A stretch of 43,351 nt of DNA from Trichosphaerium sp. ATCC 40318 (taxonomy: Eukaryota > Protista > Tubulinea): positions 1 to 43,351 of the forward strand of contig JALMLS010000512.1 of NCBI GenBank assembly GCA_038496445.1, given 5' to 3'. How positions within the stretch are numbered: the first letter of the stretch is position 1; each line of letters begins with the position of its first letter. The notes below the pieces were generated by a model. It did not search any database. It worked only from the letters and a program-made list of their open reading frames with translations, and was not told the origin of the DNA. This document shows positions 3,901 through 41,409 of the stretch, one piece after another. The position numbers were made by a program, and so were the translations under genes.

Positions 3901-4047
3901 GTCTCTTTTGATCTTCGGGTGTATGTCAGTGTAGCCTTGTTTAATTTTAAGCACTCTTTGGGAGTGAAACTTTCTGAACGTGGCGGGTCGCTTTGTTTTG
4001 GTGGTATTGCGCGTATTGTGGTACCACACAGCCGATTTGAGGAACAT
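917..4047 (-). CDS. Pentatricopeptide-repeat (PPR) protein, probably mitochondrial, multi-exon
   Basis: Arg/Lys/Thr-rich, acid-free N-terminus (MFLKSAVWYHNTRNTTKTKRPATFRKF). PPR-like helical repeats include SVLLSVMIRGY, QINILLEGFLKIGDLQKGLELYKTI and FSCLLKNYLYNGDIKSASELW. The 3' end is approximate. Confidence 0.75.
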
Positions 4048-4198
4048 TGGTTGGCCGATCTGATTACTTGGCTATTCTTTGTACGAACCCTTTTCTTGAA
4101 GTTATAGCAGCGTGTGACGTAATATTATCTCCAATTAAGTTGGTATAAATGTATTAGCGATCAAGCCATTTCTTTCAGTTTTCTGTTTGAGCTCACTA

Positions 4199-20192: not shown

Positions 20193-20978
20193 TTACAAAA
20201 TTGCAGTGTGATTTGGCCCCAGTGCTTTAAGACCTTCATCTGTTACTGAAGTAAAAACAAGCTGCATATTGTGAACTCCAATAAGCGCTTTAATGCCTTC
20301 ATCTGATACTGAAGTGTGAGAAAGGCTAATGGTATGAACACCAGCAAGCGCTTTAACACCTTCATCTGTTACTGAAGTGTGAGAAAGGCTAATGGTATGA
20401 ACACCAGCAAGTGCTTTTACACCTTCATCAGTTAGATTGTTACATAAAGAAAGGTCAATTGTATGAACGCCGGCAAGCGCTTTAACACCTTCATCCGTCA
20501 CTGAAGTTCTAGAAAGGTTTATAGAATGCACTCCGGCTAGTGCTTTTACACCTTCATCTGTTACATTACAGCGTTTCAAATTTATAGTGTGTACACCTGC
20601 CAATGCTTTCAATCCTTCATTTGATACTTTTGTGGTTGATACATTTATAGTGTGTACGCCAGCAAACTTTTTGATAACATTGTCATCAAAACAACCACCG
20701 CAAAGTACGATATAAGTATGTCTGAGAATGCCTTGATGTTGTAGAACTGATTTCGCTTGCATTACAGTTCTAACAGTGATAGTGTCGTAGCCAATAACAT
20801 CATGGATGATAGATGCAAGCAAATGGCAGGTCTGGGAAGCGGTAAATCGTGATTTGGTGGTTTGGCGTAGTATATGCGCTAATATCTCTGTGGGCAGTTG
20901 TAGTAAACAAGCACAGGCAGTTTCGTTGATTGTAACGTGTCCTGAGGGGAAAGCACAGTATTTTGTCTTTGTAGTCAT
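20193..20978 (-). CDS. Intronless F-box plus leucine-rich-repeat protein (261 aa)
   Basis: LLQLPTEILAHIL F-box followed by ~7 near-identical 21-22 aa LRRs (GVHTIxLSxTSVTDEGVKALA). Confidence 0.9.
   Translation of the reverse strand: MTTKTKYCAFPSGHVTINETACACLLQLPTEILAHILRQTTKSRFTASQTCHLLASIIHDVIGYDTITVRTVMQAKSVLQHQGILRHTYIVLCGGCFDDNVIKKFAGVHTINVSTTKVSNEGLKALAGVHTINLKRCNVTDEGVKALAGVHSINLSRTSVTDEGVKALAGVHTIDLSLCNNLTDEGVKALAGVHTISLSHTSVTDEGVKALAGVHTISLSHTSVSDEGIKALIGVHNMQLVFTSVTDEGLKALGPNHTAIL
20220..20680 (-). repeat. 63-66 bp tandem repeat encoding the LRR units
   Basis: The recurring unit ccttcatc...gtgtgagaaaggctaatggtatgaacaccagcaagcgcttta is visible at DNA level. Confidence 0.85.
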
Positions 20979-22951
20979 TGTATATTAGCACCTGTTTACG
21001 GCACGTGTTTCTGTTAGGTTGAATGAAGTTTAGTGACTGTCGTTTTAACAATGCTATTTTCCGTGAATGTCTTTCTATGCGTGAGGGTTTGCTACACTAT
21101 TCTCAAACCCTTTAAGAATTTTGTGTATTCGAAGAAGTCTCGTGACCAACAACGTGGTTTGCTTTAACTCCAAAAAAAAACGTTCCTTGGTGCTTGTGCA
21201 CCTTCAGTTTTTTTAGTCAATCATGACTCTATTCAATTTCGAAAAGTAGTACCAACCCGCTGACAAATCTCTTACTTCATGGTGCTTAGGTAATGTCCAT
21301 ATCGTTTCAAAGACAACTTGTGGTTTTCGGCGATAATTTTGACTATTTTGGCAAGTGATTTCCTATTACCCATACTAGAAAAAAACTTATAGTGGTCTAA
21401 TCCTAGCTTATGTACATGATACTGCCTTTGACGAGAATTCTAACAGAAAATTGTTATGATGGTATGATAACGTGAACCAGTACCATACAAAATTCTTCTG
21501 GTAGCAAGTTCTAGCATGACTACAGATAGATTGCAAGTATGCCCCCTTTACCTTACTTAGATGTCAAGTGAAATACCTAGATACCAATCCTTCTATTTCT
21601 GCGCTAGGCGGTGCTGTAGACATATTAAGCACTCGAAGTTCAAAGAAGGGATAAGTAACTGGACGCAGAAAGCTGAAAACAAATATTCTCATAATTTTCT
21701 GACCATCTTTTTGATATTGCCTGGCTTCTAATACCTCAGCGATTAAAATATAGTTTCTTCTGTCATATTTAAAATTGCTGTGGTTGTCAGATTACTGATG
21801 CCATTACTCTCTGGGATTGAAGAAAATGAAAATGACATGTTGATTAAACTGGGACATTTTTATTTGGGCAAAGAGCTAACTTTTGTACCCTATGCCCACA
21901 GATAACTACAAAAGCTAACAGAAAAGTTTGCACAAGAGCATAAAATTATGAGTTTTCTTACGGGCGATTTGGTCGGCAACTTCTCTAAAACACCTGGTAC
22001 GTACCATTTCTTAGTGCAACAAAATGGTTTAAGTAATTATACGCGCCTAGAAAACTCATAAACTTTTATGCTTTTGTGTCCAAAAAATGTCTGTTTTAAA
22101 ATGAAGCCCGACATGTTTTTGATTTTACGTGGGTGACTCTGAAACGCTTTATGTATTGATAGGATGATAAGAAAGTTTAAAGTTTTTCGCTTTCCTTGAG
22201 CGTGATTTGTGACATTTACGCCGTTGCGTGTGTTTCGTGATCTCATGGTGCCACTTAGAGCCGTAATGCAATTTTTTACAGTACTACATCCTAAAAACGA
22301 TCTTGAATGGGTGGAACAGTGCCAACACGCTGAGTGAACAAATATACATAAATCTTGTCTAGTAAGAATACTCTTGAAGATTGCAGTGCGTGGGTACTTC
22401 AACACTCTACCACCTTCTGGTTTAGCTGTTTGGAGAACTTTGTCCCATACTGGTGAATTTAGAAGTAATCAAAGAACTTGATGGTGTACTTAGACTGTTT
22501 GTTGATACTCGGGATATATAAACGCCCTATACTCGGTGTTGGTGTGAAAAAGTCTCCATGTATCTCAACTGGTAGGAAAGCAGTTTCAAGTATTGCTAAG
22601 TACAAAGATACATAAAATAAAGGGCTGTGAGTCTTCGCCACCATTGTACAAAATAGTGCGTTACAAATAAATAAGGAATGTAGAACGCCAAAAGCAAAGT
22701 ACTGTAGCATAATATGGTTCGCTAGGCAGTTGTGAAGAAACGGCTTGTGCTTTGTGTACACAATAATGGCGCGACAATACAACTCAGGCATGTTTTATCC
22801 CTGCTGAATGAACTGTTCCTTCAAAACCATACTGTGTACAATCACTGAACAGTTATCTAGAGTGTTGTACCAGACCCAAAACAAATCAATGAAACTAAAA
22901 GTAATATGAAAAGTATTTTATCTAATATCTCACGTGTTACAACACCGCTTG

Positions 22952-25900
22952 ATGTCTGAACAAAAACAAAGTACAGAAGAAACACTATCGTTCGAAAGTT
23001 AGTAACAATAAATAGAAATATGAACCCTATGCATTTTTAACAGTTCCAAATGTAGACGAATTGGCGATACTGAGCATAATATACGAAAGTATTAAAACAG
23101 GTGCACTTAATCTTAACATTGCTTAAGATGTTTGACAATCTGTAGTAAAGGACCTAAATAGCAGTTTATGTGAAGAAGAGTCAGCTGACACAATACTATT
23201 GCATGCAGGTATGTATCGAACCACAGGTGAATATCAACTGGATTTTAGCACAGAATGGTCTGGCTTTTATTACAACAATGTGTATACATAAGGGTGCGAG
23301 CCTTGAATATGCAAACAGTGATGGTTGGACACCTCTATATTGTGCAGGTAGCTTATTGTCAGAGTATTCTTTTGTAATTTTTATTTCTAGCACGTTATGG
23401 CCATAGTAAAGTTGTCAAAATACTACTTAGTTCAAAAGCAAATATTGAAGCAAAAGATTATTTTGGATCTACAGTTCTCCATCGTGCAGGTACCTTATCA
23501 TTGTCATTATTCAATTATTGTAACTTGTACCTATAGCGCGTCATGGACAGACCGAAGTTGTTACAATATTACTTGGCGCAGGTGCTGATATTAAAAAAAA
23601 AGATAAGTATGGATGGACAGCTCTCCATCGTGCAGGTAGCTTATTTTTGTTGTCGCTACACCTTTGATGGTAATTTGTGTTTATAGCACGTGGTGGATAC
23701 TGTCAAGTTGTTGAAATATTACTTCGTTCAGGTGCTGATATTAAAGCAAAAGATAATTTTCGATTTACAGCTCTCCATCGAGCAGGTAGCTTATTTTTGT
23801 CTTCACACGCTTGCTTAAAACTTTAACTAGCACGTAATGGACACACTAAAGTTGTTGAAATATTGCTTGAATCAAACGCAGATATTGAAGCAAAAAACAA
23901 ATTTAGAGTGGCACCTCTTCATGTTGCAGGTCGCTAATATTGGTGTTACGTATTTGTTTTTACTGCCTACTAGCACATCATGGACAGAGTAAAGTTGTTA
24001 AAATACTACTTGGGTCAAATGTAGATATTGAACCAAAAGACAAAGAAGGAAGGACACCTCTTCATCGTGCAGGTACATTTTGGTATCTTGTTATTACACT
24101 TGTTTTAACTTTTACTCTAGCTAATCAAGGACATAGTAGAGTTGTTGAATTATTACTTGGAGCAAATGCTGATGTAGAAGTAAAGTCTAACAATGGATGG
24201 ACAGTTCTCTATCGCGCAGGTGCCTTACTGTCGTCATTGTACACTTTGTAACTTTTACCTCTAGCGCATCAAGGTCACAATAAAGTTGTTGAAATTTTAC
24301 TTGGTTCAAATGCAGATACTGAAGCTAAAGACAAAGATGGATGGACGGCTCTCCAGTGCGCAGGTACTGTATTGTGTCTATACAATTACTATAACGTTCT
24401 TTAGCATATTATGGACATAATTCTGTAGTTGTTACTTTATTGAAATGTTGTAAAGACATTTCATTGTTTACAGCCATATGGCAAAAGATAGTTGATAAGA
24501 TACTACTGCGTGTTATTGCTAATGATTCTTCATTTGTTGCTGTATTTGAAACTGTGTTGACATTATTCCCAGATGGTAAGCCTTCTATTACGCTATGGTT
24601 AAAATACGCAACAATGAACCAAACACCACAATGGAGACTCAATCTTGCAAAATGGTTGCAACACTTGGTATGTCCTTTCTTTTTCACAAAGCTTGTAAAC
24701 TAATTGTTATCACAACAGCCAACACGATCTTATTTTAAACTTGCATTACAAAAAGGGATTTGTTATTTAATCTGTACATATGATCGCATAGTTGTACAAT
24801 CTTCAGTACGACCACTGTTCATTTTGTGACATTCAAATAACAAGTTGTTTTTTAAAGAGTTTTTGGATTCAGCATGGAGAAGTCATGGAAGGCATACTAT
24901 ATGACTTACCTGAGCGCATGTGGATCAATACAAAACAAAAAAGCTGTATTGAGATATGTAAAAAAGAAGGATGGTGCACAAACTCCCTTAGAGTAGCTAC
25001 GCAAGATGGTACATTAGCTACAATGCAATTTCTTTAACTTCCTGTATAGTTTGGAAGTGCTACAACTGTAAATTGTATTTGTGTCGGTATTGTGTTGGTA
25101 AACATACTCCAAACCATGTAATATCTTTACTAATGTTGGTTATTAACTTGGCATAGATGTTAAAAAAACTGTCCGATACTGTTTATGTGTGTCAGTGCCA
25201 AGATTGTAAACATGGCATTAATCCTACCTCTGTAAATCTTGCACTTGGTTTCTCACGTGCAGGTACACGTTTTTGACAGTGATAAACTAACATGCTGAAA
25301 CCAAGGATTAACAAGCGAAACCTTGTGGGACTTAAACCCAAGATTACAACATGGTCATCACTGGGATAGATCTAACATCAAGTCAGTATTCTTCTACTGA
25401 TAGTTTGTCTAACTTTATTCAAAGGGGAACTGTTGAAAGAGCAACACATTATAGAACGTTGAATCTGTTCGATGACAACACTGTGGCTAAGAGAGAACTT
25501 GAGTTTCTTCATCAACAACTATCAAAAATGCCTGGATATGATAGAGTAACTGTTGTAGAAGCACTTCTTGTATGTAATGATGTCTTGACTCGTAACTTTG
25601 GAATGTACAATACAATAGTGAAACACAGACATCAGTACGTTTAACAAATAATATTAGCTAAACGCCACGAGACCTTACACTTATTTAGAGAGCTCCCCAA
25701 GCTATTTTGTAAAGATGAATGGAAACAAGACAGTCATAAGAGAGCAGTAGCTGCGAGGTTTGAAGCTGTAATCAACGACAACAGCTCCACTTTAGAACAG
25801 GTAATGTCATTCAACATTAATCATCTTACACGTTTTCAGTCACCAGTTTTATTGATGGTTCATGGTACATCTCCTGAAGCTGCTTTGAGTATTGTAAAAG

Positions 25901-26822
25901 CTGGATTTGGTACTGTGAGTTCTTTAGATGGCGGGTATTATGGCCAAGGCATCTACTTTACTGTACATGGACATGTTTCTTAATTTATTCTTAACCTATA
26001 TTGTTTAGCGTAGCCTTGAATATGCTTGCTCATATGATACATCAGGCAATGAAGAAACAACACTTGTTTTAAGTCTAGTTACTCCTGGAAATGTATATCC
26101 TGTACGCTAACTTGTGTTTATTTATTTATGACTTTAATAGGTTACAGAAAAGCCTAATGACGATTTGAACTTTAACGGCAAACCAATAAAACCAGGATAC
26201 CAGAGTCACTACACACTTGTAGACAAGAAAGGGATTGCAGTTGCCGAAGACAAAGTCAATACGGCAGTGTGCGATGAGTTGGTTGTGGCACAAGGTATTA
26301 CAAAAAAGTTGAGTACAACACAAAGTACTAATATTACCATGTTAGATGTTCAAGCTGTGGCACGATACATAATAAAAGTTAAAAAACAACCAAGAAAACG
26401 TAATACAACCAAATCAAAAAAGAGTAAACCAAAAAACATAAAAGCAACGAAAACACCAAAGAACACCACCACCGATGATGAGAGTGCCAACAAAATCAAA
26501 CTTGACATAGACTCAGATAGTGGTGATGAGTTGTCAGACGATGAAGAGAACTTGTTCAAAAACAGGTACAAACGTGCAAACGTGATCACATAGTTTCCTT
26601 ACTTACTTGTGCAGGAAATTATGGGGAGCTACAAATATGAACAAGTCAATACAACTCAAGGAAAAAGATGTGAAACTGGAACAAGGTACCAAAGAAGAAA
26701 AAAATGTGGAACTGGACAAAAAAGATGTGAAATTGAAAGAGCTGGTTGCCAAATTGAAAGAAAAAGATGCCAGAATTGCTGAACTTCTTGCTCGAATTGC
26801 TAAGCTTGAGAGTAAACAGTAG
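22952..26822 (+). CDS. ANK-UBR-PARP protein, copy 1 (ankyrin array, UBR-type Zn finger, PARP-like catalytic domain, C-terminal coiled coil)
   Basis: Start [10 protein letters not shown]. Eight 99-nt ankyrin exons (23249-24363). Zn finger WCTN...VWKCYNCKLYLCRYCVGKHTPNH...YVCQC. PARP motifs [30 protein letters not shown]. Heptad-rich C-terminus. Appears intact. Confidence 0.88.
23249..24363 (+). repeat. Array of eight 99-nt ankyrin exons with ~45-nt phase-1 introns (period ~145 bp)
   Basis: Each exon is bounded by tag|C...GCAG|gt and encodes AxxGHxxVVxILLxxxAxIExKxxxGxTxLHxA. Confidence 0.92.
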
Positions 26823-26954
26823 CTATAAAAAGTATACTGTCAGGACGTGCTTAAACGAAATTGAGTATTGCTACAATAAATGTGCCACGAAGTAGTTTTG
26901 AGCTTGCTATGTGCTAAATTTGCTGCGGGTAGTTGTAGTAACACGCACTGGCGG

Positions 26955-27150
26955 TGTCGTTGATTGTAACGTGTACTGAGGAAAAGCACAGTATATTGTC
27001 TTTGTAGTCATTATATATTAGCACCTTTTTACGGCACGTGTTTCTGTTAGGTTGAATGAAGTCTAGTGACCGTCGTTCTAATATGGGTTTGTACTACTTT
27101 CTCGCAGTCTTCTCAGAATGTTGTGTATTTCAAAGAAGTCACGTGACCAA
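26955..27150 (-). pseudogene. Duplicated 5' fragment and upstream region of the F-box/LRR gene (tandem duplication breakpoint)
   Basis: Near-identical to ~20925-21150 (gttgattgtaacgtgt...gtctttgtagtcat...cggcacgtgtttctgttaggttgaatgaag). Only the first ~17 codons are retained, with an indel. Confidence 0.8.
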
Positions 27151-27910
27151 AACCACTGCTACAAAAGATTAAACAGCAACAATCATGGCTAGAAAGTCGC
27201 ATGTCGGGAAGTTTTGCCTTTTTCGCTTTTTTTAACGCGATTTATACCACACGGCGATGTATGTGTTTTGTGATCTAATGGTGCCATTTAGAGCTGTAGT
27301 ACAGTTTTTCACTGTACTTGATCCTAAAAATAATCTTGAATGCGTAGAGCACAGTGCCAACACTCTGTTGGAGAAACCTACATATGTGTCTTTTCCTTCT
27401 GTACTTTCATAATGTTGTACCAACCGTGGACTAAAACTTATTTTTGCCATGTTTATATTTGTTTTCATTACTTGTCTGAGCCTGTTTTTACGGTGAGCTT
27501 GAAGTGTAGTTTATATGGTTTTGTAACACTGTTACATGGGTTTGTCCCATGTAGAGCCGTAATGCTTAGTGTAAAAACGAGCTTGAATGTGTTACCACAA
27601 CACAAATACTAAAAATTTGGGTCTGAGTTTAGGTGGTGCCTGTCTGGTCCTGAGACAGCCATGATTGTATAGTACTCCAGTTGCCTCTTTGACCAAATTC
27701 AATCTGAATACACGGCGCACCAGGTCTTGTTGCATTCAGTGAACAGAGTGAAAAAACGCTTAAAGGTCTACACAAGAGTGGTATTTGCCACCTCTATTTG
27801 AGCTACTTGCTGTAGTTTGTGGGGAACCGCATCCTTTAAGAAACGGCTTGTGCATCAATGAATCACGGGAACTGAAAATTAGTATATCTAACACACTGCA
27901 ACACCGCTTG

Positions 27911-30900
27911 ATGTCTGAACAAAAGCAAAGTACAGAAGAAACGCTATCGTTCGAAGGTTAGTAACAATGGAATAGGATATATTTTCACGTGCTCTATTAA
28001 AAAGTTCCACTGTAGACGAATTGGCGATACTGAGCAGACAATACGAAAGCATTACAAAAGGTGAGCTTACTCTTAACATGGTTTTAAGGTGTTTGACAAT
28101 CTGTAGAGGACCTAAATAGCAGATTATGTAACGAAAAATTTGATGAGACAATTCTATTGTATGCAGGTATGTATCTGACCGCAAAACAAACATAAATTGT
28201 ATTGTAGCACAGAATGGTCTGGCCATTATTACAACACTGTGTATACATAAGGGTGCGAACCTTGAATATACAAACAACGCTGGATGGGCACCTCTCTACT
28301 GTGCAGGTACTTGTTGTGAATGTGCACTTGTAGCACTTTTAACTTGTATTTCCAGCACGTCATGGACATAGTAATGTTGTTGAAATACTACTTGGCGCAA
28401 AAGCAGATGTTGAAGCAAAAGATAAGTATGGATGGACACCCCTCCACCGTGCAGGTACCTTATTGTTGCAATTTCAAAATTGTTGTAACTACTTGTAACT
28501 GGATACTTCTAGCACGTCAAGGACACAGTGGAGTTGTTGAACTATTACTTGGTTCAAATGCAGATATTGAAGCAAAAGATAATAATGGATACACATCTGT
28601 CCATCATGCTGGTACCTTTATTGTTGTCATATGCGCTTATTTTAACCTGTATATCTAGCACGTCATGGACACAGTACAGTTGTTGAAGTATTACTTGGTT
28701 CGAACGCAGCTATTGAAGTAAAAGACAATTACGGATATACAGCTATGCATCGTGCAGGTACCTACTTATTGTCAAGTACACGTGTAGTAACTGTGTATGT
28801 AGCACGCCATGGACATAGCAAAGTTGTTGAAACACTACTTGGGGCAAAAGCAGATATTGAAGCAACAGGGGTATACAGCTCTCCATTGTGCAGGTACCGT
28901 ATCTTATGTCAAAGTATACTTGATGTAACTTGTACCTCTAGCACGTCATGGACACACTAAAGTTGTTGAAATACTACTTGGCGCAAAAGCAGATGTTAAA
29001 GCAAAAGATAATTATGGATGTACACCTCTCCACCGTGCAGGTACCTTATTGTGAATGTAGACTTTTGGTAACTTGTACCCCTAGCACAGCATGGACATGG
29101 CGAAGTTGTTAAATTGCTACTTTGGGCAAATGCAGATATCATGGTAAAGTCTACCAATGGCTGGACAGCTCTCCATCGTGCAGGTACTTAATTGTTGTCA
29201 TTGCACTTATTTTAACTTGTACCACTAGCGCGTCAAGGACACAATGAAGTTGTTAAAGTACTACTTGGAGCAAGTGCAGGTATTGAAACAACAGACAAAG
29301 ATGGGTGGACAGCTCTCCATTGTGCAGGTACATAGTCGTTGTCATTGCACCTTCATAACTTTCTTTAGCATACTGTGGCCATAATTCTGTTCTTGTTACT
29401 TTACTGAAAATGAGTAAAGCCGTATCACTATCTACTGATACATGGCAACAGATATTTACTAAGATAATCATGGGTGTAATCGACAATAATTCCTCACTTA
29501 TTTCTGTGTTTGAAACTGTGTTGAGCTTATTCCCAAATGGTAAGCAATCACGAAAACTGTGGTTATCTTGTGGTACAATGGACAAAAGGCCACAATGGAG
29601 ACTCAATCTTGCAAAATGGTTGCAATACTTAGCACGTGTCATTTTTTTCAAAGAATTAAACATTGTAAAACTAATTTTAATCACAACAGCCAACACGATC
29701 TTATTTTAAACTTGCATTGCAAAAAGGGATTTGTTATTTAATCTGTACATATGATCGCATAGTTGTACAATCTTCGGTACCATCAATTTAGTCTGTACCA
29801 TTCAAATAACAAAGTCGATTTTAAAGAGCTTTTGGAGAGAGCAGGGAGAATTAATGGAAGGCATACTATTTGACTTGTGGACTAATACAAAACACTCGAG
29901 CTGCATTGAGATATGCAAAAACGAAGGATGGTGTACAAACTCACTTAAAATAACCAAACAAGATGGTACGTTATAATATTAACAGTGCAATTTCTTTTAA
30001 CTTGCTATCAAGTTTGGGTGTGCTATGTGTGTAATGGATTGTATTTGTGCGAGTATTGCGCTAGGAAACATATCTCTAATCACGTACTTTTTGTACTAGT
30101 GTTGGTTATTAACATGTTGTATAGAAACTAACAAAACTGTCAAATACTATTTATGTGTGTCAGTGCAAAGATTGTAAACATGGTATTAATACTACTTCAG
30201 CAAACCTTGTACTTGGTAACTCACTTGCAGGTATTCCAGGATTTTCGCCAACAAACTAACAGACTTTCAGGATTAGCAAGTGAAACCTTTTGGGACTTAA
30301 ATCCAAGATTACAGTATGCTCATCATTGGGATAGATCTAACATAAAGTCAGTGTTCTTTGCTGCTACTTGCCTAACCTTATTGCAGGGGTGCTGTTGAAA
30401 AAGCAACAGATTATAGAACGTTGAATCTGTTTGATGACAACACTGTCGCCAAGAGAGAACTTGAGTTTCTTCATCAACAACTATCAAAAATGCCTGGATA
30501 TGATAGAGTCACTGTTGTAAAAGCACTTCTTGTATGCAATGATGTCTTGAATCGTAACTTTGGAATGTACAATACAATAGTGAAACACAGACATCAGTAC
30601 GTTTAACAAATAATATTAGCTAAACGCCAAGAGACCTTACACTACTCCTTAGAGAACTTCCAAAGTTATTTTGTAAAGATGAATGGAAGCAAGACAGTCA
30701 TAAGAGAGCAGTGTCAGTGAGATTTGAAGCCCTACTCGATAACAGCTCCACTTTAGAACAGGTAATGGCAACATTCAACGTAAATCGTCTTACACAAGTA
30801 CAGTCACCAGTTTTATTGATGGTTCATGGTACATCTCCTGAAGCCGCTTTGAGTATTGTGAAAGCTGGATTTGGTACTGTGAGTTCTTTAGATGGCGGGT

Positions 30901-31840
30901 ATTATGGTCAAGGCATCTACTTTACTGTATGTGAAACTACGTCTCAAACATATGTTTCTTAAATTATTCTTAACCTGTATTGTTTAGAGTAGTCTTGAAT
31001 ATGCTTGCTCATATGATACATCAGGCAACGGAGAAACAACACTCGTTTTAAGCCTAGTCACTCCTGGAAATGTATATCCTGTACGCCAACACCAATATCA
31101 CCTTATCTTTGTATTTGTTCACAACGTAATAGGTTACGGAAAAGCCTAATGACGATTTGAACTTTAACGGCAAACCAATAAAACCAGGATACCAGAGTCA
31201 CTACACACTTGTAGACAAGAAAGGGATTGCAGTTGCCGAAGACAAAGTGAATAAGGCAATGCGTGATGAGTTGGTTGTGGCACAAGGTATTCAACTGTTA
31301 TTAATTGCAAAATACTAATGTTATCATGTTAGATGTTCAAGCTGTGGCACGATACATAATAAAAGTTGTAAAACAACCAAGAAAACATACAACCAAATCA
31401 AAAAAGAGTAAACCAAAAAACAAAAAACAACCAAGACACCAAAAAACAAAAACGCAACCAAAACACCAAAGAACGTTACCACTGATGAGGATAGTGTGAA
31501 AATCGAACTTGACATAAACTCAGATAGTGGTGATGAGTTGTCAGATGACAAAGACAACTGTTTCATAAACAGGTACACGTGATCACAGCATTTTTCTTTG
31601 TTCCTTACTTACATGTACAGGCAATTATGGGGAGCTACAAATTTGAACAAGCCAAAACAACTGAGCGCACATGACATACAAGTGCAAGTATTATCAAATA
31701 CAATCAACAAAAAAGATGCAAAACTAGAAGAAAAAGATGCGAAATTGAAAGAGCAATGCACAAAATTGAAAGAAAAAGATACTCAAATTGCTGAACTTCA
31801 TGCTCGAATTGCTAAGCTTGAGACCAAAAAGTATCAGTAA
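27911..31840 (+). CDS. ANK-UBR-PARP protein, copy 2 (possibly pseudogenising)
   Basis: Same exon structure and motifs as copy 1. Lesions: a 91-nt ankyrin exon at 28803-28893, a donor altered to TTA|GCACGT near 29632, and a 1-nt loss in an A-run near 31425. Confidence 0.8.
28208..29327 (+). repeat. Array of eight ankyrin exons (seven of 99 nt, one of 91 nt)
   Basis: Same splice-bounded unit as in copy 1. Confidence 0.9.
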
Positions 31841-32013
31841 AAAATAATATACTAGTAACTCCCAATGAAAGTTATGTGCACAATAAAGCCATATAACTTT
31901 TTAAATTAGTTTATCGCTGTGCTATTGAACCTTTTCAGGTAGTATATGTTGTTGACGTAATACTGTTTAGTTGAGTTTTATTGAAGATTGTTGGTACTAA
32001 CATTTATTTCCAT

Positions 32014-33075
32014 TTATTCCACTTCTCCAATTTCAATGGTTCTACCTGGAGCAAAGAAGTTCAGTACTTCAGTACTCTTAGCAGAAGTCCATTCTGGTTC
32101 TTTGTCAACCGGCCACACATACAAACCTGAAAAACAGAACTAAGAATCGAGTGTAGAGTCAAAAACAGCATACCTTGAATGGTTCCATTGGATCCAGGCC
32201 ATGCCCAATGATTCACACCGTACACTTGCATTTTACAATTAGTCTCTATGCACAATGCAATTACTTTTTTGCCTTCAGCAGATCTTGTCTTATCGATGAC
32301 ATGCCCTAAACAACCATGTTAAAAAAAGAAAGCGTTTTGAAAAGTGGTTACCTTTGGTATCAAAGTGGATTTGAATACGTGGATGATCATGTACAACACC
32401 ATCATATGACACGGAAGTTATTTTATAACGACGCCATTTTGGAGAGTCTGTTGCATAGCGTAGATCGATACAGCTCGTTGGTGTATCAGCATCAGAAGGA
32501 ACAGGGACTGGTTTGATCTTTGCTTGTTCTTCAGTGAGAATAGACCAAAGTTGATTATCGGTATGGTTGCTTGTGAATTGTAAAAGAGCAGCGCCTTGTT
32601 CGGTTGTTGATCCTGGGACTTCCACACATTTACCAGAGTGAACGTTGATGATTACTTTGTCTAAAAGAGAATTAATTATATTCGGAAGAAAAATTAGGAG
32701 CGTACATCCTTCATGGTCTTCAATGTACCACCTTTGAGTATTACTGCCATGCCAATAGTATGTAATGATTCGTGTACCATCCTTCTTTTCTCCGTATAAG
32801 ATATCTAGAACCTAAAAAAGAACTGTCACAGATTTTCTGACAAGTACAAATTCAACTTACATCGTTGTTGAAAGCAGTGATCTTGTATGTTTGTTTTCCA
32901 GCAACCATATCCGATTTTTCAATCTTGTAAAGCTGTTTGGCATTGTCGGTTTCTTTCAGAGTACTTTGGATAATGTCACACACTTCTTTGTGTTAGCAGT
33001 TAGTCCAGTTTGTTTCGTCTCAAATACAAGACCAGTGTATTTGTTCTTTAAGTAAACAGGTTTGTCGTAACTCAT
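32014..33075 (-). pseudogene. Ricin-B (beta-trefoil) lectin gene, left copy, frameshifted in exon 1
   Basis: Paralogue of 35990-37073. A 14-nt segment at ~32990-33003 replaces 15 nt, giving an early TGA (...ANTKKCVTLSKVL*). This could also be an assembly error. Confidence 0.72.
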
Positions 33076-33611
33076 TTTTTATGTTGTTATTTGTAGAGTT
33101 GTTGTTGCGTGTGTTGTTGAAGATTGTAATTGATATTAAGGAGGGTAACAAGTATTCTCATAACGTGAGAATGACAGTTTTTTGACCGAAGGATATTTTC
33201 AGTTAACAATTAACTAAAACAGCAATGGAGTCTGTACAGTCGCTCAATACAATCAATAAAGAAAATAACTCTTGTGCTTTGACTAAAGATGAACGACAGT
33301 TTTTATAAAAACAACCACGCAGTATTGTAGCACCTAAACAGCCACAATCCTTTTAGCATCACGTGATATTTTCCAGAGAACCAACTTATATTCACACCTT
33401 GCGTAAGTGTCTAGTGTAGTTAGGATTGCTTGTTTATGTTGAAAATTTGTTAAGATACGTCAGCTAGAGAACATGCGTGGGAAACTAAGAAGACCGAAAA
33501 CAAAACGTCACATTTTCAAAACTAATTTATTCTTTTTGTAAACAATGTACTATGAAGTCATATTCCCTTACGACAAGGTCTGCTTCAAGAGTAATAGCCA
33601 TCACTTTATAT

Positions 33612-35096
33612 CTATTCAAGCCGATTTTTATGCACAATAGAAGGACCACATTCGTCATATTCTTCTTTAGGTATACACAATTGGTCAAACATAGGTAGGG
33701 AAGAAAGTACAGAACCACCAGCCCAAACAGAGTACTTTTTCGGTTCAACGATCTCAACTTTTATATTGTCAGATGCAAGAGCACTCACCTCTTTCTTCAT
33801 GCGATCAGTAATACCTGTGAACATACTAGAACCACCAGAGAGTACGATGTTACCGTACAAGTCTTTATAGAGACCACAACCACACTTCAAGATTGAGTTA
33901 TGTACTAACTCATGAATTCCAGGTGATTTAACATCAAGCAATGAAGGTTGAAAGAGTGCTTCAGGGCATCTGAAACGCTCATTACCAACAGTTATTGTTC
34001 TACCGTCAGGGAATTCATGTGACTTCTTGATTGAAGAGGATGATTCAGCTGTGCTCATTTCTTGTTTAAAGTCAAGAGAAACATAGCAGAGCTTCTCTTT
34101 CATGTCACGAATAATTTCTCTCTCGGCTGCTACGAAAGCTTGACCATCCTTTGATGGTGAGGCAAAAGAGTAGCCGCTTTCAGAGAGTATTTTCATCAAA
34201 TAATCAGTGAGATCACGACCAGCTAAATCCATACGCATGATACAGTTATCGATGGTTCTACCTTCGAAAATAGGTACAACATGTGTTACACCATAACCAG
34301 AATCAAGAACAAGACCTGAAGATATCAAAGTTAGTAAGTACGAAAGAAAGCAAAGAATTTGTTTTTGAATTTCTTGTTTTTTTGTTAAGTTGACTAGCAC
34401 ACCTGTTGTTCTTCCAGAAGCATACAAAGACAATACTGACTGTACTTCAGCGTATAACGCCTTCAAATTGAAAGTCTCAAACATGATCTGGGTCCTCTTC
34501 TCTCTAAAGTAACAATAGGTAAGCAAAAACAACAACTTCTTTTTTCGGAATCTTCAAAAAAAACAATAAAAGTGTAAAAGGACAGTTCTGTGTACTTGTC
34601 TGCTTTTGTGGTCAATGGTGCTTCAGAGAGGAGAACTGGGTGATCTTCTGGTGTAACATGGAGTTCGTTGAAGGCGGTATGCCATATTTTCTCCATATCG
34701 TCCCAGTTGGTTACAATACCACGTTCAATTGGGTACGTCAAGGTTTGAACGGCGCGTTTGGCTTGCGCTTCTTTACTTACGTATGATTCCTCTTTTTCCT
34801 TGCTGTGAGCGACAACAGACGCGAAGATAGAACGTGGGCAGTCATCGCCAGAAAAACCAGCTTTACACAACCCGGATCCATTATCTACCACCAAAGCTTT
34901 TACTATGAATGAAATTAGAGCGTGTCCGTTGCGTTTGAGTAAAAACGGGAGTTTTAGCGTAAAACTATGCTGACACGCGCATAAATGCTATAAAACAAGT
35001 TGTGGTTGCGTCACGTATGGTTATAACGCAATGAGGTTTTGTAATACCCGAAAGGGCCTGTTAAGGCTCTTGTACCATACCATTATCGTCACACAT
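33612..35096 (-). CDS. Divergent actin (4 exons)
   Basis: [26 protein letters not shown]..., [77 protein letters not shown]. Many departures from conventional actin. Confidence 0.95.
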
Positions 35097-35989
35097 TTTA
35101 GTTTGTTGTTACGCTTGTTAGATTTTTGGTTTTCTGCTCTAGAAAATGTTACTTTTTAACCAAAAAACCATCAATTAGCCGTTCTGTTTTTAGCCGAAAA
35201 ACTGTCATAAGATTGAACAAAAAGGCCAAATGAATTTAGCAAATAACACTATGGACGGTGTTGCATGGTTCTTTAGGAGTAAACGTCATCAAAATAATGT
35301 TGACGCTCAGTTTTTGTTGCAATTGTTGAAGTGGTGGCACTGTACTTCTCGGCTACAACTTGAATTTTTAACCTGCTATGAGAGCTTACACGCACCTAAG
35401 TCCATCAGTTGTGGAATTCTTGTCTCTTTTTCAAGCTTATCTAGGCTCAAATTGGCCTATCTGACTCAACAAGCACAGTGCTTTGTTGCTGCTACTACTG
35501 CAGGCACAACAGCAGATTATTTTCAAGAACTACACAGTAGGGAATGTTAGTTGGTGTGGGATGAAATACTACGCTGGTTGATTGTAATAGCTGAATACGT
35601 GTTTCTAGTGATACACAAAAGAGAGAAAATAACGTTTCTCTGGAAAATATCACGTGTGACAAAAGGTTTGGGAGATTAGGTGTTCTGTATTTGCTCAATA
35701 GGTATTAACAGTGTATTGTTTAAGGATAGTTCATAGGTTGCTACAATACTGCATGGTAAAAAACTGTCGTTCATCTTGAGTCAATAAACGAATGTATGTA
35801 GTTATCTTATAGATTGCCTTGCGACTACCAAGACTCCATTGCTGTTTTAGTTAATTGTTAACTGAAAATATCCTTCGGTCAAAAAAACTGTCATTCTCAC
35901 GTTATGAGAATACTTGTTACCCTCCTTAATATCAATTACAATCTTCAACAACACACGCAACAACAACTCTACAAATAACAACATAAAAA

Positions 35990-37073
35990 ATGAGTTACGA
36001 CAAACCTGTTTACTTAAAGAACAAATGCACTGGTCTTGTATTCGAGACGAAACAAACTGGACAAATGGTGACAAACAAAGAAGTGTGTGACATTATCCAA
36101 AGTACTTTGAAAGAAACCGACAATGCCAAACAGCTCTACAAGATTGAAAAATCGGATATGGTTGCTGGAAAACAAACATACAAGATCACTGCCTTCAACA
36201 ACGATGTAAGTTGAATGTGTTAGTTTAATATAGTCGCAGCATACTAACAATACCTTAGGTTCTAGATATCTTCTATGGAGACAAAAAGGATGGTGCTCGC
36301 GCCATTACATACTATTGGCATGGAAACAATACTCAAAGGTGGTACATTGAAGACCATGAAGGATGTACGCTCCTAATTTCTGAATACACTTGTATCTTTG
36401 AACTAACTGTCTTTCAGACAAAGTGATTATCAACGTTAACTCTGGTAAATGTGTGGAAGTCCCAGGATCAACAACCGAACAAGGCGCTGCTCTTTTACAA
36501 TTTACAAGCAACCATACCGATAATCAACTTTGGTCTATTCTCACTGAAGAACAAGCAAAGATCAAACCAGTCCCTGTTCCTTCTGATGCTGATACACCAA
36601 CAAGCTGTATCGATCTACGCTATGCAACAGACTCTCCAAAATGGCGTCGTTATAAAATAACTTCTGTATCATACGATGGTGTTGTACATGATCATCCACG
36701 TATTCAAATCCACTTTGATACCAAAGGTGATTATTTTTCAAAGCATGACTTTTTACTTTCTTTTTTAACATGGTTGTTTAGGGCATGTCATCGATAAGAC
36801 AAGATCTGCTGAAGGCAAAAAAGTAATTGCATTGTGCATAGAGACTAATTGTAAAATGGAAGTGTACGGTGTGAATCATTGGGCATGGCCTGGATCCAAC
36901 GGAACCATTCAAGGTATGCTGTTTTTGACTCTACACTCGATTCTTAGTTCTGTTTTTCAGGTTTGTATGTGTGGCCGGTTGACAAAGAACCAGAATGGAC
37001 TTCTGCTAAGAGTACTGAAGTACTGAACTTCTTTGCTCCAGGTAGAACCATTGAAATTGGAGAAGTGGAATAA
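35990..37073 (+). CDS. Ricin-B (beta-trefoil) lectin-domain protein with an unrecognised C-terminal domain, 5 exons, no signal peptide
   Basis: QxW-type motifs: KQLY, VLDIFYGDKKDGARAITYYWHGNNTQRW, IINVNSGKCVEVPGSTTEQGAALLQFTSNHTDNQLW. About 120 aa follow, ending PGRTIEIGEVE*. Confidence 0.88.
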
Positions 37074-37393
37074 ACAGAGATAGACGTTGATAGTACCTAC
37101 AATGTAATGTACTTCAATAAAATTCAAGTAAACATTATGTTGTCAACAACTTATACACGAACTTCAGATTTGTTAAATCTACACTAGTTCTAGATATGAA
37201 CATCAGACTTGCCTATACTAATAGGCCTCCATGAAGTAGTTCTTCAAGAGAGATTGAAATAGCTTTAGTTGTTGTGTTGCTAGATTCGCCTGTCACACTA
37301 CCTGAAAAAGGTTCAATAACACAGCGATATCCTAATTTAAAAGTTCTATTTACTTTATTGTGAGTACATTACTTTTCATTATAAGTTTCAATT

Positions 37394-40300
37394 TTATTTG
37401 AGTGTACTCTCATACTTAGCAATTCGAGAAAGAAGTTCAGCAATTTGAGTATCTTTTTCTTTCAATTTTGTGCATTGCTCTTTCAATTTCGCATCTTTTT
37501 CTTCTAGTTGAGCACCTTGTTCTTCCAGTTTGGTATCTTTTTCCTTGATCTTATTTGATAATACTTGCACTTGTAAATCATGTGCACTCAATTGTTTTGG
37601 CTTGTTCAAATTTGTAGCTCCCCATAATTGCCTGCACATGTATATAAGGAACAAAGTAAATGCTGTGATGACGTGTACCTGTTTTTCAACAAGTTCTCTT
37701 TGTCTTCTGACAACTCATCATCGCTATCTGAGTTTGTTTCAAGTTCGATTTTCTTGGCACTCTCATCATCGGCAACGCTCTTTGGTGTCTTGGTTGTTTT
37801 TTTGTTTTTTGGGTTACTCTTTTTTGATTTGGTTGTATTACGTTTCCTTAGTTGCTTTACAACTTTAATTATGTATCGTGCTACAGCTTGAACATCTAAA
37901 ATGGAATGTTAGTACTTTGTATTTTGTATGCAAGTTACAACAGTTGACTCTTTTTTGGAATACCTTGTGCCACAACCAACTCATCACACACTGCCTCATT
38001 CACTTTGTCATTTGAAACTGCAATTCCAAGTTTGTCTACCAATGCATAGTGACTCTGGTATCCTGGTTTTATGGGTTTACCATAATAGTTATCATCATCA
38101 GTAGGCTTTTCTGTAACCTATTACTGTTGTAAACAAATAAAAAGCTGAGGTAATGTTGGTGTACAGGATATACATTTCCGGGAGTGACTAGACTTAAAAC
38201 AAGAGTCAATTCTCGATTTCCTGATGTATCATATGAGCAAGCATATTCAAGGCTACGCTAAACAATACAGGTTAAGAATAAATTAAGAAACATGGCCATG
38301 TACAGTAAAGTAAACACCCTGACCATAATACCCGCCATCTAAAGAACTCACAGTACCAAATCCAGCTTTTACAATACTCAACGCAGCTTCAGGAGATGTA
38401 CCATGAACCATCAATAAAATGGGTGACTGAAAACGTGTAAGATGATTTAGGGTGAATGTCATTACCTGTTCTAAAGTGTTTGTACTTGGGCTGTTGTCAT
38501 TAATCAGAGCGTTAAACCTCACAGCCACTGCTCTCTTATGACTGTCTTGTTTCCATTCGTCTTTACAAAATAACTTTGGAAGTTCTCTAAATAGTAGTGT
38601 AAGCTCTTGTTTATAAAGAACCTGTAAGTTGTATTGGCGTTGAGTCAAGAGTAAGCTCTGTTGAGTTAATAGAAACTTGTTGTTAAACGTACTGATGTCT
38701 GTGTTTCACTATTGTATTGTACATCCCAAAGTTACAAGTCAAGACATTATTGCATACAAGAAGTGCTTCTACAACAGTGACTCTATCATATCCAGGCATT
38801 TTTGATAGCTGTTGATGAAGAAACTCAAGTTCTCTCTTGGCGACAGTGTTGTCATCAAACAGATTCAACGTTCTATAATCTGTTGCTTTTTCAACAGCAC
38901 CCCTTGCAATAAGGTTAGGCAAGTAGCAGCAAAGAATACTGACTTTATGTTAGATCTATCCCAATGATGAGCATACTGTAATCTTGGATTTAAGTCCCAG
39001 AAGGTTTCACTTTTTAATCCTTGAGTTTCAGCGTGTTAGTGTGACACTATTGAAAGGTGAGCTATACCTGCAAGTGTGTTACCAAGTACAAGATTTACAG
39101 AAGTAGGATTAATACTGTGTTCACAACCCTGGCACTCACACGCAAGCTTAGCAAATGACCATTTTCTAAGTTTCTGGAAGAAAGTTAATAACCAACTCTA
39201 GCACATAAATTACATGGTTTGGGTTATGTTCACCGGCACAATACTGACATAAAGCGACTCCTCTTTTGTTACAGTCATAGCACAGCAAGACTAGATAGTA
39301 ACTTAAAAGAATGCATTGTATAAATTATCACCTACGATTTTGTTTGGATATTTTAAGTGAGTTTGTACACCATCCTTCTTTTTTACATATCTCAATGCAA
39401 CTGGGGTGTTTTGGATTGATCCACATATCCTCAGGTAAGTCGAATAATAGTCCCTCCATTAATTCCCCGTGCTGAATCCAGAAACTCTTTTAAAAAAAAG
39501 CTGTTATTTGAAAGTCAGAGATGAAAGAGTGCCGTACCGAAGATTGTACAACTATGCGATCATATGTACATATTAAATAACAAATCCCTTTTTGTAATGC
39601 AAGTTTAAAATAAGATCGTGTTGGCTGTTATGATTACAATTAGTTTTACAAACTCTTTGAAAATGAAATGACATACCAAGTATTGCAACCATTTTGCAAG
39701 ATTGAGTCTCCATTGTGGCCTTTCTTCCATTGTTGCACAAGATAGCCATAGAGTGCTAGATTGCTTGCCATTTAGCATAACTGTCAACACAGTTTCAAAT
39801 ACAGCAATGAATGAGGAATCATTATCAACAACACCTATTACTATCCTATTAAATAGCATCTTATTGTGCCATATATTTGTAGATAGTGAAATGGCTTTAC
39901 TCATTTTCAATAACCTAACAAGAACAGAATTATGCCCATAATATGCTAAGAAAGGTTACAACAATTGCATAATTTTGACAAATGGGTACCTGAAAGGTGG
40001 AGAGCTGTCAATCCATTGTTATTCTTTACTTCAATATTTGCACTAGAGCCAAGTAATATTTCTACAACTTTAATGTGCCCATTACGTGCTAAGAAACACA
40101 AGTTACATCAAGTATATTAACAGTAAGGTACCTGCTAAGAAGAGAGCTGTCCCACCATTGTTATTTTTTGCTTCGATGTCTGCATTTGAACCAAGTAATA
40201 TTTCAACAACTTTACTATGGCCATCACGTGCTAAGAAGTGAGTTACATCTATCATTTCTTGACAACAAAATGGTACCGGCATGATGAAGAGGTGTCCACC

Positions 40301-41409
40301 CATATATACCCCTTGCTTCAATATTTACTCTTTGACCAAGTAATACTTCTACAACTTTACTGTGTCCATTACGTGCTAAGAAACAAGTTAGATATAAGTT
40401 ATTATATATATTAACAGTAAGGTACCTGCAAAGAGAAGAGCTGTCCATCCTTTGTTATTTTTTGCTTCGATATCTGCATTTGAACCAAGTAATATTTTAA
40501 CAACTTTACTATGGCCATCACGTGCTAAGAAGTGTGAGTTACATCTACCATTTCTTGACAACAGAGGTACCGGCATGATGTAGAGGTGTCCACCCATCTA
40601 TACCCCTTGCTTCTATATCTGCGTTTGATTCAAGTAATATTTCAACAACTTTACTATGGCCATCACGTGCTAAGAAGTGTGGTTACAGCTATCCATTTCT
40701 TTACAACAAGGTACCAGCGTGATGGAGAGCTGTCCATCCATTGTTATTTTTTACTTTAATATCTGCATTTGAACCAAGCAATATATCAACAACTTTAATG
40801 TGTCCATGACGTGCTACGAATTACAAATTACAACATTTGTACACTAAATACACTCAAGTACCTGCATAATGGAGAGGTGTGTATCCATCATTGTCTTTTG
40901 CTTCAATATCTGCATTTGAACCAAGTAATATTTCAACAACTTTAATGTGTCCATTACATGCTAGAGGTACAAGTTACATCAAATGTATATTGACAACGAT
41001 ATAGTAAGTCACCTGCTAGATGCATAGCTGTCCGTCCATCACTGTTTGTATATTCAAGGTTGGTACCCTTATGTATACACAGTGTTGTAATAATGACCAG
41101 ACCATTTTGCGCTAAAATACAGTTTTATATTGTATGAGCGTATTGTACATACCTGAGTACAATAGAATTGTCTCATCAAACTTTTCGTTACATAATCTGC
41201 TGTTTAGGTCATTTACTACAGATTGTCACAAGATATTAAAAGCCATGTTAAGAGTAAGCGCACGTGTTGTAATACTTTCGTATTGTCTGCGAAGTATCGC
41301 CAATTCGTCTACATTGGAACTGTTAAATGCACACGTGAAAATATCATGTTTCTCGTTACTAACCTTCTAACGATAGCGTTTCTTGTGTATGTTGTTTTTG
41401 TTCAGACAT
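37394..41409 (-). CDS. ANK-UBR-PARP protein, copy 3
   Basis: Same exon structure. Eight 99-nt ankyrin exons at 39990-41111; LMVHGTS, GYYGQGVYFT, DELVV; coiled-coil last exon. Confidence 0.87.
39990..41111 (-). repeat. Array of eight 99-nt ankyrin exons
   Basis: Counted at 41013-41111, ~40862-40960, ~40715-40813, 40571-40669, 40426-40524, 40277-40375, 40132-40230 and 39990-40088. Confidence 0.92.

Follow-up and report, generated by a model that had tools for sequence, protein, structure and literature searches.

Ankyrin repeats and a poly(ADP-ribose) polymerase (PARP) catalytic domain are combined in the tankyrases (PARP5a/5b, PARP clade 4), which carry an N-terminal ankyrin array, a PARP domain with a His-Tyr-Glu (H-Y-E) triad and, in the form of a SAM domain, a module for self-association. 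PARP10, PARP12, PARP13 (ZAP), PARP14 and PARP15 have H-Y-I/L or degenerate triads and carry CCCH, WWE or macro domains. Hypervariable arrays of ANK, TPR or WD repeats occur in NLR-like candidate immune receptors of fungi and brown algae, where the arrays consist of one-repeat units, duplicate internally and vary at binding positions. A second ankyrin–PARP design is found in the Clade 1-ank PARPs (Dictyostelium ADPRT3, C. elegans PME-5 and Mucoromycota ANK-WGR-PARP), in which ankyrin repeats again precede the PARP domain, including in Amoebozoa (PMC4245714; bioRxiv 10.64898/2026.07.25.740670). Here we describe three related genes at positions 22952-41409 of contig JALMLS010000512.1 from the marine amoeba Trichosphaerium sp. 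ATCC 40318, a stretch of 43,351 nucleotides referred to below as the window. On balance, though with confidence only somewhat better than even, we read them as a fast-evolving, lineage-specific family of ankyrin-directed ADP-ribosyltransferases with a tankyrase-like catch-and-tag action, represented by three paralogues of which two are intact and one is decaying.

Results

Splice models for the three copies were built with a dynamic-programming script and corrected by a three-way DNA alignment and by transcript-derived homologues. All copies have 23 exons and GT-AG introns mostly of 39-68 nt (the longest 106 nt), usually with the donor G|GTAC; copy 2 has one GC donor. Copy 1 (22952-26822, plus strand; ATG at 22952, stop TAG at 26820-26822) is an intact gene for 955 amino acids with introns of 39-54 nt and no internal stop, and its exon order is backed by the transcript-derived homologues P0002 and P0157. 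Copy 3, on the minus strand (37394-41409; ATG at 41409, stop TAA at 37396-37394), is likewise intact and encodes 973 amino acids without an internal stop; its spliced model places the ankyrin exons at 41111-39990, the zinc module at 39290-39068, the PARP exons, also recognized by their motifs, at 38902-37964 and the coiled coil at 37631-37397. Copy 2 (27911-31840, plus strand) keeps the same layout, with three disabling changes evident from alignment and translation. Its fifth ankyrin exon (28803-28893) has lost 8 nt between 28868 and 28869 and measures 91 nt instead of 99, so that the frame is shifted and runs into stops unless the exon is skipped. Exon H1 is followed by an altered donor (29632-29633), GC instead of GT (TTA|GCACGT compared with TTG|GTATGT in copies 1 and 3). 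The tail exon (31333-31572) has gained a 26-nt insertion (at about 31428-31453) and lost two 3-nt segments, a net change of +20 nt that produces a premature stop before the coiled coil. Copy 2 is probably a recent pseudogene in the course of decay; we call it recent because its PARP part still shows a ratio of non-synonymous to synonymous substitution rates (dN/dS) of 0.17-0.26 against the other copies. An earlier, sequence-only reading of this DNA had proposed three paralogues of shared architecture, and the three colinear copies and their 23-exon models bear this out, except that copy 2, with its three lesions, is not intact.

The encoded proteins begin with about 55 residues that lead into eight 33-codon ankyrin exons, with half-repeats in the flanking exons. 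In copy 1 the array occupies 23249-24363 (plus strand) as eight 99-nt phase-1 exons (23249-23347, 23391-23489, 23537-23635, 23687-23785, 23831-23929, 23974-24072, 24121-24219 and 24265-24363) between half-repeat caps, and the other copies also have eight such exons apart from the shortened exon 5 of copy 2. The translated repeats follow G-x-TPLH-x-A...GH..VV..LL with a 33-residue period and match Ank, Ank_2, Ank_4 and Ank_5 above the Pfam cut-offs (Ank, Ank_2 and Ank_4 at E 2e-10 to 1e-9), which substantiates the array recognized in the sequence-only reading. Next comes a helical linker of about 165 residues (24405-25008, plus strand), composed of exons H1 (24405-24667), X (24719-24805) and H2 (24858-25008); it was delimited by homology to residues ~20-120 of P0002, and neither its exons nor the homologues match any Pfam family there. 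Exon X (87 nt, 29 residues; aligned at 24719-24805 in copy 1, 29690-29776 in copy 2 and 39538-39624 in copy 3) has the same protein sequence in all copies and differs at only 2 of 87 nucleotides per pair, between exons with 65-78% protein identity, and its motif is also kept in the distant paralogue P0002. We had considered this region as an ultra-conserved non-coding element, seen as a 97-nt 'intron' plus a 14-nt micro-exon; Rfam returned nothing above chance, and homology to P0002 identified it as a coding exon. A further linker exon, L (25306-25381, plus strand, 26 residues in copy 1), which separates the zinc module from the PARP domain, was missed by the automatic model; it is coding and in frame in all three copies and matches the segment 'GLKS..WD.N.RL....WDRSK' of P0001 and P0002.

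Downstream of the main PARP exons, the translated tail exon of copy 1 (26346-26565, plus strand) holds the end of the ADP-ribosyltransferase (ART) fold, a Lys-rich stretch resembling a nuclear localization signal and an acidic Ser/Asp/Glu stretch, a layout repeated in the Trichosphaerium transcripts P0155 and P0157 described below. The C-terminus (26615-26819, plus strand) is a predicted coiled coil or leucine zipper. As the sequence-only reading had suggested, a continuous Leu/Ile heptad register covers the last ~60 residues; the last 63 residues of copies 1 and 3 have, in their best registers, 11 hydrophobic residues at a/d positions, Leu or Ile for the most part, and in Pfam the exon gave weak matches, to coiled-coil families only. 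That reading was also right about the lack of a SAM domain, since none was detected on the exons between the ankyrin array and the PARP domain or in P0001 and P0002. More generally, Pfam revealed no SAM, WGR, PARP-regulatory, macro or WWE domain and no nucleoside triphosphatase (NTPase) domain of the NB-ARC or NACHT type on any exon or homologue, nor did the copies or their homologues show a TIR, a death-fold or any other domain of immune signalling.

The PARP catalytic domain of copy 1 spans four exons (25425-25634, 25689-25962, 26009-26101 and 26141-26294, plus strand), assigned from a partial match to PF00644 and from homologues. By motif position, the triad codons are His at 25861-25863, Tyr at 25954-25956 and Glu at 26276-26278. 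The intact triad described in the sequence-only reading is present in all three copies, with His in VHGT, Tyr in GIYFT or GVYFT and Glu in DELVV, and the domains are predicted to be active. When a single exon (25645-25980, VHGT...GIYFT) was compared with PF00644, the score of 21.6 bits fell below the cut-off of 26.7 because the exon holds only part of the domain; the homologues P0001, P0002, P0003 and P0004 score 30.9-45.5 bits, above the cut-off. Among 1.84 billion representative proteins, searched exhaustively, only 196 are related to this exon at E<=1e-3, the best being 61% identical, and in a family alignment of 30 sequences the Tyr is invariant and the Glu nearly so. A profile of the family matched PARP10, ZAP, PARP12 and PARP4 in the PDB at E 1e-7 to 1e-5, with no tankyrase among the 60 matches listed. 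An AlphaFold model was obtained for residues 95-455 of homologue P0002, which from the catalytic exon to the C-terminus is 51% identical to copy 1; its mean predicted local distance difference test score (pLDDT) is 75.8, exceeding 90 over most of the ART core. Foldseek aligned this model with more than 370 PDB chains at E<=1e-3, and the 50 listed are all PARP catalytic domains: tankyrase 1/2 rank first, with PARP3, PARP12, PARP1 and PARP4 nearly equal (E ~1e-10, 14-18% identity). Judged by these sequence and model comparisons, the domain belongs to a divergent PARP-like branch whose relatives carry many different N-terminal domains, among them ankyrin, TSP1/EGF, FG-GAP, CUB/EGF, COR+SAM and DUF4116 modules.

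Two other assignments in this region were discarded. In the exon that precedes the catalytic one, Pfam suggested a UBA domain (21.3 bits); this is spurious, because the P0002 model places this stretch inside the ART fold, as its N-terminal beta-alpha part. A relationship to transcription activator-like effectors (TALEs) was suggested by a phmmer search of the PDB with the catalytic exon alone, in which all proteins returned were of the TALE-repeat type, at E ~1e-11. This proved to be an artefact of summing over repeats: the peptide PVLxxxHGxxPExxxxI (25840-25915) gains 2-5 bits per repeat. Such a chance TALE-like peptide is a trap for automated annotation.

The Cys/His module of copy 1 (25050-25262, plus strand), defined by alignment, is divided between two exons, 25050-25117 (C-x2-C-x4-C-x2-C-x3-H-x3-H) and 25157-25262 (C-x-C-x2-C-x-H), with the overall pattern C-x2-C-x4-7-C-x2-C-x3-H-x3-H ... 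C-x-C-x2-C-x-H. Beyond this pattern, exon H2 ends with three more conserved Cys; ten Cys and three His residues of the module, putative zinc ligands, are invariant in all three copies. The sequence-only reading had named this module a UBR zinc finger. The pattern does recall several cross-brace fingers, including the UBR box; membership of that family is not supported, as zf-UBR (PF02207) gave no match at E<=10 with the finger exons of copies 1 and 3, where searching the two halves apart lowers sensitivity, or with the contiguous finger of a related environmental contig (L006:3015-3428), which holds both halves in one open frame with no intron. The only Pfam matches of the module in the copies are to B-box profiles (PF00643 / PF25287) and lie below threshold, at 20.0-20.3 bits for copy 1 (cut-off 24.1) and 19.4 for copy 3 (cut-off 27); they span only the C-terminal half of the profile and only the first half of the module, the second half matching nothing in Pfam. 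Neither a PDB sequence search with the finger nor a Pfam search with the L006 open frame returned anything. Atlas features on the L006 finger gave weak zf-AN1, ZZ and C1 leads (0.82), and the AlphaFold model of this finger, at a pLDDT of 47.6, is too poor for use. On these comparisons, the module reads as specific to the family.

The divergence of the copies was assessed by pairwise Nei–Gojobori counts. In the PARP domain dN/dS is 0.17-0.26 and protein identity 88-92%, compared with 0.47-0.67 and 61-65% in the ankyrin array; the corresponding values are 0.35-0.68 and 53-69% for the zinc module, 0 and 100% for exon X, and 0.86 and 59% for the coiled coil (copy 1 versus copy 3). The catalytic exons, at 82-96% DNA identity compared with 69-88% for the ankyrin exons, fall short of the near identity that had been claimed for them. 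Synonymous divergence (dS) is 0.2-0.5 in most parts and similar for the ankyrin and PARP regions, so the contrast between the two reflects constraint and not age. Within the ankyrin repeats, canonical positions on the binding face have a dN/dS of 0.55-1.06 as against 0.37-0.55 in the framework, and dN on the binding face is ~3 times that of the framework between copies 1 and 3 and 1.6- to 2.6-fold higher in the other pairs. Repeats at the locus are 60-93% identical in DNA and do not correspond strictly one-to-one between copies. Near-duplicates lie within one array (c2.2/c2.6, 93%; c3.5/c3.7, 92%), which indicates intra-array duplication or conversion, and the ratio of non-synonymous to synonymous differences per site (pN/pS) among such recent duplicates is 0.59. 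No positive selection was detected in whole ankyrin arrays, in surface compared with framework positions or in recent intra-array duplicates. These counts suggest nearly neutral drift of the binding face and purifying selection on the enzyme. The proposal of a variable module joined to a conserved effector is upheld in so far as the PARP domain is the more constrained of the two, and qualified in that the ankyrin ratio does not exceed 1 overall. The excess of non-synonymous ankyrin change on which the sequence-only reading had staked its defence model was absent: dN/dS is below 1 overall, and the surface and intra-array values give the same answer.

Evidence for expression comes from a close paralogue. 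P0157, from MMETSP0405 (taxon 498012, Trichosphaerium sp. ATCC 40318), is 95.8% identical to the PARP core of copy 2 over 118 residues; its identity with copies 1 and 3 is 72-74% over ~260 residues. It runs uninterrupted across four predicted junctions (GIYFT|SSLEY, NVYP|VTEKP, VVAQ|DVQAV and FKNR|QLWGAT), and this continuity indicates transcription of a close paralogue with splicing as in our models. The top homologues, P0001 and P0002, come from JGI sample 3300016894, and their contigs are taken for transcripts because their reading frames are uninterrupted by introns. Both share the helical linker, PARP domain, Lys-rich/acidic tail and coiled coil and are without the zinc module; the P0002 contig (L001) carries ankyrin repeats upstream, helical linker, PARP domain and coiled coil on one RNA. 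In a quick IQ-TREE phylogeny, copies 1-3 form one clade (Shimodaira–Hasegawa-like approximate likelihood ratio test, SH-aLRT, 99) whose sister group is P0155, P0001 and P0002 (support 100); it sits on a long branch within the environmental family. Only P0157 bears the organism label in its record; P0155, P0001 and P0002 are taken as Trichosphaerium transcripts because of their placement in the tree and their shared tail and coiled coil. In G+C content and intron size the window fits the published Trichosphaerium genome, with its short introns and 37.7% G+C; the paper makes no mention of PARP or ankyrin (PMC10521059).

More distant relatives were found in environmental DNA. Contig L006 (ENA ERZ25072490 ctg168336) contains, at 1478-4300, a weak ankyrin match, an H2-like exon, the finger and PARP exons. 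Two low-coverage metagenome contigs, L006 and L005, have an intron after GIYFT at the same position as here, and they indicate that a related organism occurs in nature. Scanning metagenome contigs with the pre-catalytic exon yielded one weak relative of 40% identity. The family profile, scanned against 2.9 million viral contigs, also gave a single weak match, in a 65-kb contig (L004:5001-5180, IMGVR_UViG_3300030118_003411; 38% identity over 64 residues), on which count a mainly viral origin was rejected.

The arrangement of the locus (G+C of the window ~36%) points to how the trio came about. Self-blastn of the window delineates three colinear copies of ~4 kb and 76-79% identity, at 22907-26834 (copy 1, plus strand), 27873-31846 (copy 2, plus strand) and 41435-37297 (copy 3, minus strand). 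Copies 1 and 2 are in tandem, each unit with the same upstream material. A 176-nt fragment of the 5' end of an F-box/LRR gene (Pfam; 20196-20984, upstream of copy 1) recurs between them (20873-21048 compared with 26908-27081, 88% identical) and marks the boundary of a tandem duplication unit of ~6 kb. Similar minus-strand open frames also lie upstream of copies 1 and 2 (22040-22468 and 27235-27510; 77% DNA identity over ~170 nt). Copies 2 and 3 lie in an inverted repeat with arms of ~5.5 kb, 27884-33336 (copy 2 and the following 1.4 kb) and 41435-35734 (copy 3 and the preceding 1.4 kb). Each arm holds one PARP gene and one ricin-B lectin gene (31942-33336 and 35734-37156, in inverted orientation; RicinB_lectin_2 in Pfam), the lectin parts being 89% identical and the PARP genes 77%. 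At the centre of the duplication (31942-37156, lectin genes included), one actin gene (33615-34987, minus strand; Pfam Actin) lies between the arms. From this layout, two events appear to account for the trio, one a tandem duplication of a ~6-kb unit and the other a duplication of ~5.5 kb in inverted orientation. Identity among the copies is mosaic, with different pairs nearly identical in different tracts of 60-110 nt, consistent with patchy gene conversion between the genes. Identical tracts (59-110 bases) occur within 25326-25517 for copies 2 and 3, 26147-26256 for copies 1 and 2, and 25885-25943 for copies 1 and 3.

Discussion

The Trichosphaerium genes share with the tankyrases an N-terminal ankyrin array, an H-Y-E PARP domain and a self-association module, here a predicted one, and the catalytic domains of tankyrases are the top Foldseek matches of the P0002 model. 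By analogy, the two may also share a logic in which the ankyrin array recruits a substrate and the PARP domain tags it. The differences are nonetheless considerable. The amoeba trio has no SAM domain, and self-association would come from the leucine zipper at the C-terminus; the ankyrin array and the PARP domain are separated by a helical linker and a Cys/His module; the identity of 15-18% between tankyrase and the P0002 model is no better than that to PARP1, PARP3, PARP4 or PARP12; and the amoeba family is multi-copy and confined to one lineage. The Clade 1-ank PARPs carry WGR and PARP regulatory domains and group with DNA-repair PARPs, whereas neither domain was found here or in the homologues. 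Because the SAM, WGR and regulatory domains were not found, we place the trio in neither group. Among solved structures, the best sequence-profile matches are PARP10, PARP12, PARP13 (ZAP), PARP14 and PARP15 (E 1e-7 to 1e-3), and PARP12 and ZAP resemble the trio in having a zinc-binding module upstream of the ART domain; unlike the PARP10/PARP12/ZAP group, the trio keeps H-Y-E, has an unrelated Cys/His module and adds ankyrin repeats and a coiled coil. No paper describing an ankyrin–Cys/His–PARP–zipper family was found in the literature searched, in line with the sequence-only reading, which did not recognize the architecture from described PARP clades.

In the mechanism that we favour, each paralogue would bind a different client protein through its ankyrin arm, the zipper would dimerize or oligomerize the enzyme, possibly across paralogues, and the PARP domain, using NAD+, would ADP-ribosylate either the captured client or itself, perhaps in the nucleus. 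The product would be a 'catch-and-tag' enzyme, tankyrase-like in action and independently assembled, in a family that would evolve by duplication, patchy gene conversion and gene loss. Several points weigh against this proposal. Catalysis, zinc binding, oligomerization and client binding are all predictions from sequence, and an H-Y-E triad does not tell mono- from poly-ADP-ribosylation. The domain calls come from single exons searched one by one and from homologues 45-96% identical to the copies. Two protein searches gave no product close to copy 1 or copy 3, and the predicted start codon and first-exon donor differ between the copies (46 versus 50 nt).

A tentative alternative, which we think improbable but worth weighing, is that the genes are an immune sensor–effector repertoire in which ankyrin arms recognize giant-virus or bacterial proteins, whereupon the coiled coils would oligomerize and the PARP domain would ADP-ribosylate targets or consume NAD+. 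Birth and death in a multi-copy gene, with copy 2 decaying, would suit such a role, as would the concentration of variation on the ankyrin binding face next to a conserved effector. The same PARP branch elsewhere follows varied putative sensor domains (ankyrin, TSP1/EGF, FG-GAP, CUB and COR+SAM), and the antiviral proteins PARP12 and ZAP are among its closest solved relatives in the profile search. Heavy giant-virus gene traffic has also been reported for the Trichosphaerium genome (PMC10521059). What speaks against a defence role is the lack of excess non-synonymous change, whether in the ankyrin array (0.47-0.67), on its surface (0.55-1.06) or among intra-array duplicates (pN/pS 0.59). The neighbouring lectin, actin and F-box/LRR genes are uninformative. 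The likeness to an intracellular immune receptor drawn in the sequence-only reading also loses ground, as neither an NTPase or other receptor-type switch nor a domain of immune signalling, whether TIR, death-fold or other, was found. With the NLR-like receptors the trio shares one-repeat units, intra-array duplication and variation centred on binding positions, but it has neither NB-ARC nor NACHT, its repeats are only 60-93% identical in DNA and there is no signal of positive selection. Equally doubtful is the boldest form of the idea, that Trichosphaerium holds a large, diversifying repertoire in which interchangeable one-exon ankyrin cassettes would generate new binding specificities towards giant-virus or bacterial proteins and a zipper-oligomerized PARP would ADP-ribosylate the invader or deplete NAD+. 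If true, it would amount to a class of eukaryotic innate-immune receptors that lacks an NTPase switch.

Slightly less probable still is that the proteins are endogenous regulators, each paralogue a tankyrase-like enzyme of housekeeping or regulation that tags its own host client, for instance in the nucleus or at the cytoskeleton, with copy number reflecting sub-functionalization and not conflict. Purifying selection throughout (dN/dS below 1 in all domains), a tail resembling a nuclear localization signal and the invariance of exon X, which suggests a conserved internal partner, are what such regulators would show, and ankyrin–PARP fusions with cellular roles are known in tankyrase and the Clade 1-ank PARPs (PMC4245714). 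Such a role sits poorly, however, with the decay of one of three copies, with the confinement of the subfamily to one lineage on a long branch and with an ankyrin binding face that is nearly neutral, which would be unusual for a fixed client interface. Very improbable is that the copies are non-functional relics, either decaying duplicates or a virus or mobile-element insert without an active enzyme: copy 2 has its three disabling changes, no transcript of copies 1-3 was found in the protein and metagenome-contig searches, and one contig of giant-virus size has a weak relative of the PARP domain. Yet the frames of copies 1 and 3 remain open for 955 and 973 codons through 23 exons with every splice site intact, the PARP ratio of 0.17-0.26 shows that the protein is under selection, a paralogue whose PARP core is 96% identical is both transcribed and spliced, and that viral match is the only one, and a weak one, in 2.9 million viral contigs.

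Read as ankyrin-directed ADP-ribosyltransferases, the Trichosphaerium proteins would represent a third, independently assembled ankyrin–PARP design after the tankyrases and the Clade 1-ank PARPs, one in which an ankyrin array, a helical linker, a zinc module, an H-Y-E PARP domain and a leucine zipper are joined, and whose PARP branch is covered only generically by solved structures and Pfam. The family is also a candidate for a part in amoeba–virus conflict, for which the evidence at the locus alone is descriptive. Because its paralogues naturally vary the binding arm and keep the enzyme constant, it may be useful for learning how ADP-ribosyltransferases acquire their targets.

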